A DNA stretch of 64,000 nt from Octopus sinensis (GCF_006345805.1 NC_043000.1:96286001-96350000); one strand, 5' to 3'; counted from the first letter of the stretch, positions 36,679 through 62,878 are shown. Numbers and translations: made by a program. Notes: generated by a model not told the origin, from the letters alone.

Positions 36679-36742
36679 GCATTGTTTTATATAAAAAGCC
36701 CACACTGGGGTCAACACCGTCTATACTTAAATCTTCAGACAT
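36679..36742 (-). CDS. PHF14: PHF14 exon 1 (MSEDLSIDGVDPSVGFLYKTM)
   Basis: ATG at 36742, GTAAGT donor, phase 1 matching exon 2, located at the shared promoter with NDUFA4. Assigned by position and phase rather than recognised homology. Confidence 0.75.
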
Positions 36743-37081
36743 TTTATTAGCAGTTTTCACAATTCCCAGTTGCTAATATTTTGGTTCAACACATAACATA
36801 GTGGTATACATAACCGGAAGTTAACCTCTATAACATCGGAGAAAAAACCTAAAATAATTATTTAAGAAAAAAATATATAAAGTCAACATATAAACAGAAA
36901 AAATAAAGCATATCATAAATATTAATTTTATTAAATATTTAGGGCTCATAAAATAATTACTAATATTGTAGTAACTGCAGACCTTAAATCTGCCTCCGGT
37001 CACTGATCTCAGCCACCGACGTTCGTGAAAGCTTTATCTCTGGTAAATTGTTCAAAGGGGAATTTTGAATTTCAACTAACA
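36743..37081. promoter_or_regulatory. Putative bidirectional promoter PHF14/NDUFA4 with ETS/GABP-type CCGGAAGT at 36814-36821
   Basis: 339 nt between divergent ATGs; exact CCGGAAGT; locally more CpG than the introns. Confidence 0.7.
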
Positions 37082-37123
37082 ATGAAAGGATTGAGTTTGC
37101 AGAGTCTGAAGACTCACCCATCT
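37082..37123 (+). CDS. NDUFA4: NDUFA4 exon 1 (MKGLSLQSLKTHPS)
   Basis: ATG, GTATGT donor, phase 0. Confidence 0.9.
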
Positions 37124-40055
37124 GTATGTATCTTGGAAATAGTTTTATCTTTGTTAACTATTTTAATTTACCAATGTCACTCCTCATGTTGATGATAATT
37201 TTAAGAACTCTATTAATGCGAAGGAATATAAGACTCATCTGTTTCTATCAAGAATTTTGTTTATCTCGCTAACGTTTTAGGAACATTTTCCCCTTATTTT
37301 CAGAAAAAAAAATCCCAATTAATATTTCCATTAATTAATAAGGTAATAGAATTAACTGTCTCACCTCCTCCTTTCCCTCTGCCCTTTACTCTCCCCCTTA
37401 AAAGATGTTTTATTCTACACTTCACGCAAAGTTTTGTTATCCTTTAAAAGTGTTATAATTTTAATTCTGATTACGAAAACGTTTTATAATGTTGAAAGCA
37501 CTCCAAGATAGCATTTTCAATATGTGTTTATGTTAAAATGTTAATTGTTCGATGTATGAATTTGTCCTAAAGTTGTTTACTTTAACCTCTCACTTCTGTG
37601 TCCTTCATGAAGGTTACTTTTGTTAAATATTTTACCTTTTATTTTCATTCATTTATTTTGAAGATGCTAGACTACGGTCACATGCCCTGTTGTTTGTGTA
37701 TGTTTATTTTATTTATTTATTTATTTTTTTGCTTTCTTAGATTAGTGGGTGTGGAGTTATACTAACTCTTGCTTAAGATGGGATTGGTATGTTTCCAAAT
37801 TCAAACAAAGGAAAAGAAAAATTATCTAAAAGGAGGCAAATGAAATTAACGTATGGCTTGGATAGGAATTGCCAGATGCTACTGCTAATAATTTAACACA
37901 AGCATAGCTAAAGTCCCAATGGGTGGTTGCAAGGAAACCTAAGAAAGTATAAAGTTCATCTGCAAACCAATTATTGGGTGTTGGTTAGTGATGGTGGTGG
38001 TTTAACTCCAAATTAGCCATGATCACCCAGGTATATGATGAAAGAATCAAATAATACCGATGAAAGACCCTCCTGTGTGACCATGCCGCCGTCTTTTTAA
38101 ATAACCAGAGCGATAATGTCTCATTCTTTTCTCTTTTGAGACGTGTGACCATGCCGTCTTTTGAAATAACTAGAGCGATATTGTCTCATCATCCTTTTCT
38201 TTTTTGAGACGTTGGGGTGTAATCTGAGTGAGAATTAGCTGGCGGCATAACAGGTGGGCGAATTATTTATTCTCGGCTGTTTATATATCAGATGTCACCA
38301 TTCCGTGTGTGTTGAAGGTTAGAATCTTTTTGAAAGGTTATCAAAGACTGTAAGGCCTGAGTAGAGAGGATACATGCAATGACGCAATGTTATTGAGAAC
38401 ATTTTCTTGTGCAAGCATTCATTCGAACTGCGACATTATATATGCATTTTTTAAAGAATTATTTTTCGGTCTTTCGCCGATGTCAGAGACATAACAGTCT
38501 GCTGATGCAAGGGCATGGAAACATTTTTAGCTTCTAAGAACACATCTCAAAGATTGAGAAACCAAGCTGATAACGACAGCGATTGACATTTTTTTTTTTT
38601 TTGAGATAAAAGTTTCGTTGTAATTAAGTGTCTAGATAATAGCAGTAGTAACTGATTAGAAAAATGTAAATCTTAAGAACAAAGAAAAAGAATTGTTACA
38701 AACACTGACCAACTTAAGATGAATGTGTTGAATGTAAGAGATCCAAGTCACAAATAACTAGTGTAAGTGAACTTAAATCCAAGGCCATGAGATTATCATC
38801 ATCGTTTTAACATCCAGTTTTCCTTCACCTATTTCCCCATTGCCAGACATTCTTTTACAAAATATTAGGAATGATGGTCACCATTTCTGTAAGTGACACC
38901 TGTGTACAACTATTACTTGATGTCAAAATAAGGAGACACTACTACTCATACATGTGTATATATATATGCACAACGGACTTCTTTCATTTTCTATCAACCA
39001 AATTTACTCGCATGGTTTTGGGGAGCTCAGAGCTATACTGGAAGACACCTGCCCAAAGTGCCTTTGTAGTGGCAGTAAATTTTAAACTAAATGGTTGGGA
39101 AGCTAACTTCTTAAACATATAACTGTGCCTATCCCTATAGCCATTCCTGAGATATCAGCTGAAAATTGCTGGATTTTCTATAAATGAAGTGGAAAACTAT
39201 AAAGTATTTTCCAAGATTATCGAGAAAGAACAAAGATGAATATTTTCATATCTAAATAGTACATTGTTAGCATCAGAGGCAGATATGAACTTAAACTTTG
39301 AAAAGAGCTTATTTGTGGAAAATTAAATTCTTCTGTGCTAATTTAAAAAATCTTTCTTGCGAGTCTTGATTTACAGATTACCTTGTGATGAAGGAAAGAT
39401 GAAAGAGCCTCCCAACCACATAGTTCTAGGTTCAGTCCCATTGCTTGGAATCTTGGGCAAGTGTCTTCTACTTTAGTCCCAGTTTGACCAAAGCCTTCTA
39501 AGTGGATTTGGTAGACGGAAACTGAAAGAAGTCTTGTGATATGTTTGTGTGTGTTTTAGTGTTTATGTTTGTTCCTCACCACTGCTTGACATTTGGTGTT
39601 GGTTTGTTTACATCTCCATAACTTAGTGATTTTGCAAAAGAAGCAGTAGAATAAGTACCAGGCTTATATAAAAAAAAAAGCACTGGGGTTGAGTTGACTA
39701 AAAACCCTTTAAGATGGTGCCCCAGTATGGCTGCCATCCAATGGTCAAAACCACCCTTGGTTCTTTGATACTATTTCCCTGTTTTAAAGTTATCTATATT
39801 TAAACCTATCAAAATTTCATTTGTTCCAAACACCATCTTAATATTAACAAAATTATTTCCACTAAATTCATCATTATTTTCAAAATCAATTGAAACAAAG
39901 GTTGTGTATTTCTCTAGAAATCTGGTAACAATAGGGTTAATATTATCATCACTACTAGCATCATCGTTTAACATTATTTTGTGAAAAAAAAAAGAAAATT
40001 ATTTTGATGTTTAATGATATTAAGCAAACTAACATGTTAACTGAAAATTTTTCAG

Positions 40056-40144
40056 CTGGTACCTCTCTATGTGTTTGTTGGCGCTGGAATGGCAGGTGCC
40101 TTTTTTTATATTACAAGGTTAGCCACAAGGTCTCTTGATGTCAG
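40056..40144 (+). CDS. NDUFA4: NDUFA4 exon 2 (LVPLYVFVGAGMAGAFFYITRLATRSLDV, TM helix)
   Basis: cAG/GTTAGT, 89 nt, phase 0/2. Confidence 0.95.
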
Positions 40145-60668: not shown

Positions 60669-60706
60669 ATGTCTGAACGATATAGTTTTTCCCTGACAAC
60701 ATTTAG
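60669..60706 (+). CDS. PSMA2: PSMA2 exon 1 (MSERYSFSLTTF)
   Basis: ATG, GTAATG donor, phase 2. Confidence 0.95.
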
Positions 60707-61879
60707 GTAATGTATTTTCATATTTATTTATTTATATTACGATATTTTTCACTGTTGATCATTTTATTTTACGGAATACTCTATTGTCTCTATCATTTGT
60801 TATGATTATTTTATTCTGAAACTCAAGGAAATATATATTAAGGAATTCCTGAAACTCGTTCAATTTCTGCTTTCTCATCCATTCGCGGCATGACCGGTCT
60901 CTTTGTCGCTTTGGAATATTTTAAGATATTTCACTATTATTTATATTTGTTCTTAACTATACAATTCCGAAAACGTAAGATCTGTAAGTTACTAAATCAA
61001 TTTGTAAAATTATGTTGTTACCATCTTGAATATCTCTATTTTTAAATACTTTGTACTTTAACTGCCTTTGCTTAATTGTATTTTTAAAATGTTTTTATCC
61101 TCGTGTTGAAAGCTTTGAGATTGTTGGGTAAAAGAAATAAATATTGGTCAATGAAAACAAATCAGTTCTTATCGCAATTGGAAACCGTACAATTAACATC
61201 TTTAGCTGTTAATTCTGTACATATTGGCAAGTTCGAGACTAATCGAAAGGATGTCGTTAATTTTTGTATAAAGTATTCACGAGAAACTTGCGTGCGTATA
61301 ATGCTATATTGCTGGATTATTGTATATAAAGATTGTTTTCCCTAATTTTCATTAATTGAAAATATTTTTTTTTACTTAAAAATCTCCTATTGAACGTTCA
61401 AAAAGCTAATCTTTTCATGATCACAAGTTCCGTACGAAGTCTCGGGTTTCCGTAGCGGTAAGGTATTGAGGAACAAACCTGATTCTGATTGACCAACCTC
61501 TTCTTGGGGTTCAAAGTATTCACAACTACCCTCTCCTTGAGGTTGTTCAAAATATTCACAACTCACGAAACGAATTTGTTTACTCTCATTCTTACTTACT
61601 GTCTTTTTCTTATGAAATTTTTTATTCGGCTATTTTATACTTGTTATTCTTCCTATTTCATAAATCTGCATTTTTTTTGTTATCATGATCACTACTTTCA
61701 CAAATTTTGGTATGGCATTTGCACGGAAGAATATTTCACTGTTATTGATCAGTTCAGGTAGGTTACAAGAATCAGTGATTCTTGTAGGCCAAATATTGAT
61801 TCTTGTTGTATGATACTGCTTCATACTATGCTGATGTGCTTCCTTGCCAATCTTTTCTTCTTCATCATTATCTGTGATA

Positions 61880-62660
61880 CAGTTGATCTGCCATAGATGA
61901 AATGAAACTGTTATGTTCCTTCTTATATCTGACTATCTTTCTCTTCATTATGATTTTCCTAATTTTACTCACAACACTGGTGAGACTTACTGGTTCATAG
62001 TTTCCAGAATCACACCTATCCCCATTCTTGAAGACTAGTAATTTTAGCTTTCTTCAGTTCCTTGGATATATCTTATATGGCTTGCTAATAAAAAGATGAA
62101 AATTAACTCCTTTGACCTCAGAAGTGATTCTATTATCTCTTTGATGACCCTTCAGGTCTAGGAGAGTTGTACCTCTTCAATGTAATTGTGTGTTTTATCT
62201 CCATAGTTAATAAATTAGTACCTTGTAGGGTATTTCTATCAGGTTCTTTTGTGGACACACTACTAAAAAATCCTGTGGGTACTTCAGCATTTTATTGTTG
62301 TTAATTATTTATGTCACACCCATGCCATTCCTATACAGCTCACTTAATCAGGATTTGTTTTGTTCTGTTTGTCTTCAAATATATTTTTAGAATATTTGAA
62401 GATTTGTCATGTTTAGGCATATGTCAATTTGGGTTTGACATCTTGAATCATTTCCTATAACAACCTCTCTGCTCTTTTGATTTTGTACAGTGTAAAGATT
62501 GTCTCTTTTTTCTCAACCAGAGTTGCCTTGAGTTCATCACCATTCTTTTAAATTTCTTTCTTAAGGTTTTCTCTTATTTTAGCTACATCTCATTTCATTT
62601 TCTCAATTTTGTTGTTAGTTGCACCTTCAAAAAAAAAACCCCAGATCCTCTTCGATTTTA
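61880..62660 (-). mobile_element. Decayed CR1 LINE remnant in PSMA2 intron 1
   Basis: rc gives FKNGDRCDSGNYEPVSLTSVVSKI (CR1 RT N-terminus). Confidence 0.65.
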
Positions 62661-62801
62661 TTGTCACTCTGTTAAGTAGTTTGCACTAAGATGCAATTGT
62701 AAAACACTTTAAAATTGTGAATCAACTTAAAACCCTATCAATACTTGCAATTGAATAATGTTTTTTTTTTTTTGCTTCTTTATTTTATTTTCATTTTACA
62801 G

Positions 62802-62878
62802 CCCTTCAGGTAAACTTGTCCAAATTGAATATGCTTTGGCAGCAGTTGCAGCTGGTGCACCCTCTGTTGGGATTAAAG
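62802..62878 (+). CDS. PSMA2: PSMA2 exon 2 ([26 protein letters not shown])
   Basis: Long poly-T tract, cAG/GTAAAT, 77 nt, phase 2/1. Confidence 0.96.

Follow-up and report, generated by a model that had tools for sequence, protein, structure and literature searches.

The closest described systems to the locus reported here are of three kinds. One comprises conserved ancestral microsyntenic pairs (CAMPs, Irimia et al. 2012, PMC3514665) and divergently paired genes (DPGs) with bidirectional promoters (PMC12672016), and human MRPL32-PSMA2 has been catalogued as a DPG, with transcription start sites 191 bp apart (PMC12672016). Another is the novel cephalopod microsynteny (Schmidbaur et al. 2022), hundreds of which are unique to coleoids, result from genome reorganisation and are enriched in translation, redox and chromatin genes (PMC9023564). 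The third is human chromosome arm 7p, where PHF14 and NDUFA4 are neighbours at 7p21.3 (PMC13541444) and PSMA2/MRPL32 are located at 42.93 Mb (PMC12672016); the wide separation of these two pairs that an earlier note on this DNA had claimed for human is borne out by these positions.

In Octopus sinensis, the same two pairs stand tail-to-tail in a single block, in the order and orientation <PHF14 NDUFA4> <MRPL32 PSMA2>. The window (the whole 64-kb stretch of DNA that was analysed) is derived from chromosome CM016862.1, to which its bases 50669-64000 are 100% identical, and the four-gene block fills it and extends past both ends. The interval under study, 36679-62878, begins at the final base of PHF14 exon 1 and ends at the final base of PSMA2 exon 2, and contains PHF14 exon 1 and PSMA2 exons 1 and 2 but not the remainder of either gene. 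Gene models were built by hand, with introns bounded by GT..AG throughout. The gap between start codons is 339 bp in PHF14/NDUFA4 and 229 bp in MRPL32/PSMA2, and 9,594 bp of transposon-rich DNA separates the stop codon of NDUFA4 from that of MRPL32. The earlier note had been correct in this gene order, in the identities of all four genes (by Pfam and named PDB chains, detailed below) and in its figure of ~9.6 kb between the two stops. The left-hand pair consists of the following parts.

790..36742, minus strand: 5' half of PHF14; the 3' half lies to the left of the window
36742-36679, minus strand: PHF14 exon 1, with ATG at 36742, MSEDLSIDGVDPSVGFLYKTM
21831-21709, minus strand: PHF14 exon 2, which begins LQRDPRKRRVKP
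~19593-19417, minus strand: PHF14 acidic exon
~17634-17593, 14373-14314, 11785-11684 and 10138-10080, minus strand: first four PHF14 PZP-domain exons
~8067-7954, 4122-4028, 2838-2788 and 951-790, minus strand: remaining four PHF14 PZP-domain exons
37082..45560, plus strand: NDUFA4 (cytochrome c oxidase subunit NDUFA4, B12D / MLRQ family), 4 coding exons, 83 aa
37082-37123, 40056-40144, 42285-42342 and 45498-45560, plus strand: NDUFA4 exons, with stop TAA at 45558-45560

In tblastn searches, the PHF14 exons were collinear with the PHF14 proteins of the gastropods Bulinus and Batillaria and the chelicerate Pycnogonum, including the N-terminal motif, and also with an approximate human PHF14 probe. 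Splicing of exon 1 to exon 2 restores the conserved FLYKTML-QRDPRKRR, and the joined PZP region scored 348 bits against PDB PHF14 (7d86/7d8a), compared with 114 for AF-10 and 108 for Jade-1. Judged by these matches the gene is PHF14, as its PHD1-ZnK-PHD2 (PZP) cassette fits PHF14 better than other PZP proteins. The NDUFA4 protein scored 57.6 bits against Pfam B12D (PF06522; cut-off 21.5) and E=3e-21 against the PDB entry "Cytochrome c oxidase subunit NDUFA4", all of its PDB matches being NDUFA4, and the model is 100% identical to O. vulgaris protein P0007. Against approximate human sequences it scored 84 bits for NDUFA4, 54 for NDUFA4L2 and 29 for C15orf48; given a score above the family threshold and a preference for NDUFA4 over its human paralogues, the gene is by sequence NDUFA4. 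The parts of the right-hand pair are as follows.

55155..60439, minus strand: MRPL32 (mitochondrial ribosomal protein bL32m), 3 coding exons, 171 aa
60439-60370, 57470-57231 and 55360-55155, minus strand: MRPL32 exons, with stop TGA at 55157-55155
60669..62878, plus strand: PSMA2 (20S proteasome subunit alpha type-2), continuing rightwards out of the window
60669-60706 and 62802-62878, plus strand: PSMA2 exons 1 and 2, 38 aa within the window

The MRPL32 model agrees at 100% identity with protein P0001 of the O. sinensis annotation, where that protein is named 39S L32. The model matched Pfam Ribosomal_L32p (PF01783) at 27.1 bits (cut-off 21.3) and, over residues 30-165, PDB bL32m chains at E=4e-20; a Ribosomal_L32p zinc-ribbon with a mitochondrial-type N- and C-terminal extension identifies the predicted product as bL32m. 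The 38 aa of PSMA2 matched Proteasome_A_N at 42.9 bits and scored 58 bits against PDB alpha type-2, compared with ~30 bits against alpha-3, -5 and -6. With alpha type-2 the best match among the alpha subunits, the predicted protein is PSMA2, and a full 235-aa PSMA2 is annotated at the same locus in three Octopus assemblies.

Each pair diverges from a short intergenic region.

36743..37081, no strand: PHF14/NDUFA4 divergent intergenic region, 339 bp between start codons, presumed bidirectional promoter
60440..60668, no strand: MRPL32/PSMA2 divergent intergenic region, 229 bp between start codons, AT-rich

The start-codon spacing of 229-339 bp suggests that both pairs may be served by shared bidirectional promoters. 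An ETS/GABP-type site, ACCGGAAGT, is located at 36813-36821 inside the PHF14/NDUFA4 region and occurs once in the 64-kb window; the 31-kb Argonauta locus, for which an alignment was also made, has just two copies of ACCGGAAGT, both in its PHF14/NDUFA4 intergenic region. This site may be bound by an ETS/GABP-type factor, and its conservation in both octopod genera would lend indirect support to a bidirectional promoter for PHF14/NDUFA4. In the other pair, alignment showed that the stretch next to the MRPL32 start, TATATATAAACTTTAGTTACGTAT, has been conserved both in O. bimaculoides and in Argonauta, and three Octopus assemblies have the same 229-bp gap between the called genes.

The two pairs differ in their distribution among other animals. 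MRPL32-PSMA2 was found head-to-head in three Octopus species, Argonauta, Solemya, Argopecten, Liolophura and Ptychodera (gene calls, confirmed by tblastn), a set that spans three mollusc classes (two bivalves, a chiton and octopods) and a hemichordate; called-gene gaps ranged from 100 to 302 bp across the three Octopus, Solemya, Argopecten, Liolophura and Ptychodera. The pair is lost in the annelid Owenia. With the human pair (PMC12672016) added to these molluscs and the hemichordate, MRPL32-PSMA2 is clearly an ancient head-to-head pair, as had been claimed. PHF14-NDUFA4, for which the earlier note had made the same claim, was found among the animals sampled only in the octopod genera Octopus and Argonauta: it is absent from the gastropods Bulinus, where the two genes are on different contigs, and Batillaria, where a C2H2 ZNF gene lies upstream, and from the butterfly Maniola. 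In human, the two genes presumably also stand head-to-head, across an intergenic distance of tens of kb. The claim draws on octopods and human and finds no support in the two gastropods and the butterfly; outside the octopods the evidence for the age of this pair is the human neighbourhood, on which it may be old. If two genomes share ~10^4 orthologues, any particular pair of neighbours would recur by chance in the second with a probability of ~2x10^-4 (our own estimate), and because of this low chance per pair the side-by-side occurrence of two such pairs is not coincidental.

The junction between NDUFA4 and MRPL32 was sought in seven outgroups (Owenia, Solemya, Argopecten, Liolophura, Bulinus, Maniola and Ptychodera), whose visible flanks measured 3.9-15.5 kb. 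The cephalopod sample comprised the octopods Octopus and Argonauta. Argonauta hians has the whole block: its PHF14 exon 1 is 95% identical, and next to it come NDUFA4, MRPL32 and PSMA2, ordered and oriented as in Octopus; among the genomes sampled, the junction was seen only in these two genera. By tblastn, no NDUFA4 was detected downstream of MRPL32 within 15.5 kb in Solemya, 5.3 kb in Argopecten, 3.9 kb in Ptychodera, 6.2 kb in Liolophura (where the sole other called gene, which codes for an H_lectin protein, sits at the edge of the locus) or 10 kb in Owenia (where the next gene is a kinase). From the other side, MRPL32 was not found downstream of NDUFA4 in Bulinus, which has CEP70 there, or in Maniola, which has a BRO1/ALIX-domain gene. 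A different gene thus occupies the junction position in four of the seven outgroups (Owenia, Liolophura, Bulinus and Maniola). The right flank also varies: PSMA2 is followed by a PH+SH3 gene in Octopus, by RRM genes in the scallop and the acorn worm and by a FAD-oxidase gene in the chiton. C7orf25, whose presence after PSMA2 the earlier note had proposed to check, was not called there, the next called gene in both O. sinensis and O. vulgaris encoding the PH+SH3 protein.

The DNA between the two stop codons has the following features.

45561..55154, no strand: tail-to-tail spacer, 9,594 bp between the NDUFA4 and MRPL32 stops
52552..54065, plus strand: degraded pogo/Tigger-type DNA transposon within the spacer, HTH_Tnp_Tc5 and DDE_1 ORF fragments

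The spacer is made up of interspersed repeats, microsatellites (by tandem-repeat scan) and the transposon remnant; the ORF list showed no host gene across 45561..55154. By self-BLAST, 2,867 of its 9,594 bases (~30%) have copies elsewhere in the window, and its earlier description as repeats is broadly right. Two Pfam families matched the remnant: DDE_1 (E=2.4e-26) and HTH_Tnp_Tc5, the latter with E=1.9e-4 and a score of 21.8 bits, slightly below its 22.2-bit cut-off. The equivalent spacer of Argonauta is only ~1.7 kb, and no unique conserved non-coding sequence common to the two spacers was found, the matches being to repeat families only.

The reading we prefer, to which we assign a probability of roughly 0.7, is that two independent old divergent pairs were set tail-to-tail by a rearrangement in the cephalopod lineage and then persisted. 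In each pair (PHF14 with NDUFA4, MRPL32 with PSMA2), both genes would be transcribed from one short bidirectional promoter, an arrangement that would make a pair hard to break. The rearrangement that placed the pairs tail-to-tail would fall between the divergence of cephalopods from bivalves, chitons and gastropods and that of Octopus from Argonauta, a bracket that is loose, as the sampled cephalopods are octopods only. The junction would merely have persisted afterwards, probably neutrally, while transposons would have grown the Octopus spacer from ~1.7 kb, the Argonauta size, to 9.6 kb. The direction of change was probably a gain in cephalopods, not many losses. In favour of this reading are the gene models and identities, the whole block in Argonauta, the wide distribution of MRPL32-PSMA2, the lack of the junction within the visible flanks of seven non-cephalopods, the lineage-dependent right flank, the many microsyntenies unique to coleoids (PMC9023564) and the ETS-type site common to both octopod genera. 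The outgroup flanks covered 3.9-15.5 kb, and ancestral linkage of a looser sort, across longer spacers or with other genes in between, may have existed, especially in Argopecten and Ptychodera, and the location of both pairs on human 7p fits an old chromosome-scale linkage, which counts against the preferred reading.

The best-surviving alternative, though an unlikely one, is that the block is a functionally constrained novel microsynteny specific to cephalopods, in which the joined pairs share a regulatory or topological compartment and are kept together by selection. Conservation between Octopus and Argonauta despite very unequal spacer sizes would be expected of such a block, and its translation, redox and chromatin functions are the classes enriched in novel cephalopod microsyntenies (PMC9023564). 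Against this, chance is expected to be enough to keep adjacent genes 2-10 kb apart together over long periods, the two spacers have only repeat families in common, and genes in novel microsyntenies are reported not to be co-expressed (PMC9023564); the four gene names were not found in the portion of that study's supplementary material that was searched. Somewhat more doubtful still is a coleoid-wide form of this proposal, in which the tail-to-tail joining is a novel microsynteny under selection with, for example, all four genes in one chromatin compartment. If true, a selected coleoid-wide block would offer a dissectable case in which reshuffling built regulatory neighbourhoods from old, unbreakable two-gene units.

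The earlier note had proposed instead that <PHF14 NDUFA4> <MRPL32 PSMA2> is an ancestral bilaterian microsynteny, kept in octopods and split in vertebrates; other lineages would then have split it as well. Each pair looks old on its own, both are on one human chromosome arm and the block is stable across two octopod genera, all of which favour the proposal; its improbability comes from the junction, which is absent from all seven non-cephalopods, viewed from both sides and within flanks of 3.9-15.5 kb. At the 4-15 kb scale the pairs are thus unlinked in outgroup invertebrates, an outcome that the earlier note had itself named as contrary to the idea. An ancestral block would require at least five independent losses (in the annelid, bivalve/chiton, gastropod, insect and deuterostome lineages), and coleoid genomes are the most rearranged of these lineages, not the most conservative (PMC9023564). 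Were the block ancestral, the few known deep bilaterian microsyntenies would gain a four-gene unit, and some blocks would be seen to have outlived the reshuffling of coleoid genomes; the evidence favours the contrary. Finally, it is very improbable that an error of assembly or annotation created the adjacency, or that the NDUFA4-like gene is a retrocopy, or a paralogue, of the true orthologue linked to PHF14: NDUFA4 is short, and short genes are readily retroposed, but this gene is not a retrocopy because it has three introns with GT-AG borders, its protein fits NDUFA4 above NDUFA4L2 and C15orf48 with only NDUFA4 among its PDB matches, the same block is present in the independent Argonauta assembly, and the right half (MRPL32-PSMA2) recurs in three independent Octopus assemblies.

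The octopus block shares features with each of the three described systems and departs from each. Like CAMPs and DPGs, the octopus pairs are arranged 5'-5' with gaps of 229 and 339 bp, the orientation of MRPL32-PSMA2 is kept from molluscs to hemichordate to human, and, as in HSPD1-HSPE1, the genes are housekeeping or mitochondrial ones. Unlike members of the human DPG catalogue, PHF14-NDUFA4 is missing from the DPG lists for human (PMC12672016), and unlike CAMPs it is broken in the sampled gastropods and the butterfly. Like the novel cephalopod microsyntenies, which comprise at least three genes with orthologues in other animals, the block is tightly packed, is present in cephalopods and not in the sampled outgroups, and matches in its translation, redox and chromatin classes; the published definition demands Euprymna scolopes plus an octopus (PMC9023564), while the block is known here from octopods only, and unlike novel microsyntenies of unlinked genes it was assembled from two older conserved pairs. 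Human 7p has the same two neighbour pairs (PHF14/NDUFA4 at 7p21.3, MRPL32/PSMA2/C7orf25 at 7p14), with MRPL32-PSMA2 head-to-head in both species, but the pairs are ~32 Mb apart in human compared with 9.6 kb in Octopus, and the octopus gene after PSMA2 encodes a PH+SH3 protein, not C7orf25. These comparisons point to the two-gene head-to-head pairs as the stable units, MRPL32-PSMA2 extending from molluscs to human, and to the junction as lineage-specific, which supports the view that rearrangement cannot break bidirectional pairs, unlike larger blocks. The octopus block, which opens no new question, is an ordinary example of known phenomena and a tidy illustration of a known principle.

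The two head-to-head pairs described in an earlier note, PHF14/NDUFA4 and MRPL32/PSMA2, are set tail-to-tail, and this four-gene order and orientation is confirmed by gene models in which exons were placed with probe proteins and then assembled by hand. Every intron of these models has GT..AG borders. The note had read the sequence accurately, as the bounds of its interval are the last bases of PHF14 exon 1 and PSMA2 exon 2; the block itself extends past that interval.

Gene models of the four-gene block (window positions)
36742-36679 and 21831-21709, minus strand: PHF14 exons 1 and 2; the 3' half of the gene lies off the left end
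Near 19.5 kb, minus strand: acidic exon of PHF14
17.6 kb down to 0.8 kb, minus strand: eight exons of PHF14 encoding the PZP (PHD1-ZnK-PHD2) cassette
37082-37123, 40056-40144, 42285-42342 and 45498-45560, plus strand: NDUFA4, 83 aa, hand-built model
60439-60370, 57470-57231 and 55360-55155, minus strand: MRPL32, 171 aa, hand-built model
60669-60706 (exon 1) and 62802-62878 (exon 2), plus strand: PSMA2; the remainder of the gene lies past the window end

From position 50669 to 64000 the window matches Octopus sinensis chromosome CM016862.1 at 100% identity; by offset, the whole window lies at ~96.286-96.350 Mb of that chromosome. Scanning it for Rfam families and tRNA genes gave no match. The predicted products of NDUFA4 (B12D, 57.6 bits), MRPL32 (Ribosomal_L32p, 27.1 bits) and PSMA2 (Proteasome_A_N, 42.9 bits) all score above the curated Pfam cut-offs, and annotated Octopus proteins are 100% identical to the MRPL32 and NDUFA4 models. 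Among PDB chains, the NDUFA4 product matched one named "Cytochrome c oxidase subunit NDUFA4" and the MRPL32 product matched bL32m chains, while the PHF14 PZP region scored 348 bits against PHF14 vs. 114 bits against the next PZP protein, AF-10. The PSMA2 fragment scored 58 bits against proteasome alpha type-2 and ~30 bits against other alpha subunits. In a comparison with human sequences that is only indicative, NDUFA4 is closer to human NDUFA4 than to NDUFA4L2 or C15orf48. The gene is not a retrocopy, since it has three introns.

Between the start codons of PHF14 and NDUFA4 lie 339 bp. Spliced together, PHF14 exons 1 and 2 yield the motif FLYKTML-QRDPRKRRVKP, which is the same in gastropod PHF14 and has closely similar forms in sea-spider PHF14, thereby validating the predicted PHF14 5' end facing NDUFA4. 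The sequence ACCGGAAGT, an ETS/GABP-type consensus, occurs once in the 64-kb window, at 36813-36821 in this intergenic region; in Argonauta only two copies are present in 31 kb, both in the PHF14/NDUFA4 intergenic region and one near each gene. This placement fits a conserved promoter shared by PHF14 and NDUFA4, with a putative ETS-type factor and presumed bidirectional activity. The Argonauta intergenic region measures 1.6 kb (locus L003, ~8500-9900) vs. 339 bp in Octopus. Inserted repeats account for the difference, among them two tRNA-like/SINE-like copies along with a run of ~40-45 bp repeats that have the core GCATCCGGTGGCT. The Argonauta ETS-type sites still adjoin PHF14 and NDUFA4 despite these insertions.

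The PHF14 N terminus of invertebrates has a common motif, (GVDPSVxFLYKTM)-L-(Q/N)RDPRKRRVKP...DDSEDDSDF, that spans exons 1 and 2 (36679-36742 and 21709-21831, minus strand). Human PHF14 begins at the segment that corresponds to exon 2 (MDRSSKRRQVKP...), so the first coding exon may be specific to invertebrates or may have been missed in vertebrate annotation. A non-LTR retrotransposon remnant lies at 29531-30844 (plus strand) within the first PHF14 intron, which is 14.8 kb long; its 438-codon ORF codes for a reverse transcriptase (Pfam RVT_1, E=1.5e-28) followed by a PHD-like Cys/His motif.

That both pairs are old, as the earlier note held, is firmly established for MRPL32-PSMA2, while for PHF14-NDUFA4 it is an indirect conclusion. 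The MRPL32 and PSMA2 start codons are 229 bp apart, and the head-to-head arrangement and this gap are identical in O. vulgaris, O. bimaculoides and O. sinensis. The same arrangement, with the genes confirmed by tblastn and gaps of 100-302 bp between called genes, was found in two bivalves (Solemya and Argopecten), a chiton (Liolophura) and a hemichordate (Ptychodera). In human, where the pair is at 42.93 Mb on chromosome 7, 191 bp separate the two transcription start sites (PMC12672016 supplement). MRPL32 of the annelid Owenia faces an IF-2B-family gene rather than PSMA2. The deposited Solemya MRPL32 model (252 aa, L002 10001-19782) appears to be mis-extended: the true last exon closes with the conserved ...RPQWFPKHLMSKAQ tail at 14239, and the annotated C terminus derives from a repeated element also found at L002 23227-22913.

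The PHF14-NDUFA4 pair is broken in three of the genomes compared. PHF14 and NDUFA4 are on separate contigs in the gastropod Bulinus; in Batillaria, also a gastropod, a C2H2 zinc-finger gene lies upstream of PHF14, and tblastn detected no NDUFA4 within 10 kb of PHF14 even though the conserved exon 1 is present; and in the butterfly Maniola, NDUFA4 has a Mob1-family gene on one side and a BRO1/ALIX-domain gene on the other. The coral Orbicella has tandem PHF14-like gene models with just 3.5 kb visible upstream. The PZP region of PHF14 is present there in two near-identical copies in tandem, ~6.1 kb apart, with one more PHD gene model, the third, after them (L010 3528-25757); either the region was duplicated recently or it is duplicated in the assembly. 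The human genes, presumably divergent, are neighbors, and the literature places both at 7p21.3. Because the chance recurrence of a given neighbor pair is only ~2x10^-4 by our own estimate, we infer that this pair is most likely ancestral and has been repeatedly lost.

The NDUFA4-MRPL32 adjacency that joins the two pairs has a different distribution. The comparison drew on protein searches and on the genomic context of their matches, with flanks of up to 10 kb beyond the anchor gene; among cephalopods it covered the octopods Octopus and Argonauta, the searches having returned no ortholog from squid, cuttlefish or Nautilus. In Argonauta hians the whole block is present with order and orientation unchanged, and PHF14 exon 1 is 95% identical. 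Downstream of MRPL32 in other animals, NDUFA4 was sought by tblastn with six NDUFA4 proteins.

Sequence downstream of MRPL32 outside cephalopods
Solemya, 15.5 kb: no NDUFA4; no other called gene
Argopecten, 5.3 kb: no NDUFA4; no other called gene
Liolophura, 6.2 kb: no NDUFA4; an H_lectin gene at the locus edge
Ptychodera, 3.9 kb: no NDUFA4; no other called gene
Owenia, 10 kb: no NDUFA4; a PTEN_C2 kinase gene

From the other side, NDUFA4 is followed by CEP70 in Bulinus and by the BRO1/ALIX-domain gene in Maniola. The junction was thus seen in none of the seven non-cephalopod species within the visible flanks, and in four of the seven a different gene occupies the position. Parsimony favors one gain of the junction in the cephalopod lineage over at least five independent losses. 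The block is more likely a cephalopod-lineage juxtaposition, persisting without demonstrated function, and the data place the joining no more closely than after the divergence from other molluscan classes and before that of Octopus from Argonauta. A looser ancestral linkage of the two pairs, extending beyond the visible flanks, is compatible with these data, and the presence of the two pairs on one human chromosome arm, 7p, is in keeping with an old linkage at chromosome scale. The proposal that the four genes formed an ancestral bilaterian unit, kept in octopus and split in vertebrates, is not supported, given the absence of the junction from the visible flanks of all seven non-cephalopods. 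An assembly artifact as the source of the adjacency is rejected, as independent assemblies agree.

The stop codons of NDUFA4 and MRPL32 are separated by 9,594 bp, in which no host gene was found; the corresponding Argonauta spacer is only ~1.7 kb. Candidate polyadenylation signals, identified by eye, lie ~120 nt past the NDUFA4 stop (AATAAA) and ~40 nt past the MRPL32 stop (ATTAAA). About 30% of the spacer is repeated elsewhere in the window, and it contains several microsatellites and a degraded pogo/Tigger transposon (52552-54065). Approximately 670 bp of this remnant (53745-54412) is unmatched when the spacer is aligned with that of O. bimaculoides, indicating an insertion or deletion in the transposon after the two Octopus species diverged. 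A short interspersed repeat family of ~150-280 bp is represented at 52941-53223, and related copies lie near 4397-4552, 6026-6160 and 56930-56986; it has up to 14 matching segments in the window, and the loci of Argonauta and O. bimaculoides contain copies too.

The gene following PSMA2 varies, with a PH+SH3 gene in Octopus, RRM-domain genes in scallop and acorn worm, and an FAD-oxidase gene in the chiton. C7orf25, which had been proposed as the gene to look for at this position, is absent among the called genes of Octopus, where the PH+SH3 gene comes next. A scan for a C7orf25-like ORF, which could miss a multi-exon gene, found only a degraded non-LTR retrotransposon in the 8.5 kb past O. sinensis PSMA2. 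The PH+SH3 protein (412-422 aa; L013 29162-30679, L011 35607-36660) is SKAP-like by domain content. As human SKAP2 is also on 7p, beside HOXA, several of the genes that are neighbors here may come from one ancestral linkage group. An RRM_1 gene lies on the minus strand a few kb past PSMA2 in both Argopecten (L006 20796-24755) and Ptychodera (L014 25854-27461), and this could be an older neighbor relationship lost by Octopus; tblastx of the visible 3' parts found no similarity between the two, and their orthology is unproven.

Among conserved ancestral microsyntenic pairs, the dominant class is head-to-head genes separated by a short intergenic region (PMC3514665). Literature searches returned no paper joining PHF14, NDUFA4 and synteny, and no PHF14 paper among the top matches for PHF14 with cephalopod or mollusc; the four gene names are absent from the supplements of Schmidbaur 2022 (PMC9023564) and Davila-Lopez 2010. 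Coleoid genomes are heavily reorganized, and this has produced 505 cephalopod-only microsyntenies from genes with orthologs elsewhere, which are enriched in translation, redox and chromatin functions and whose genes tend not to be co-expressed (PMC9023564). The four-gene block fits this picture of novel coleoid microsyntenies, with the added detail that it is built from two older two-gene units.
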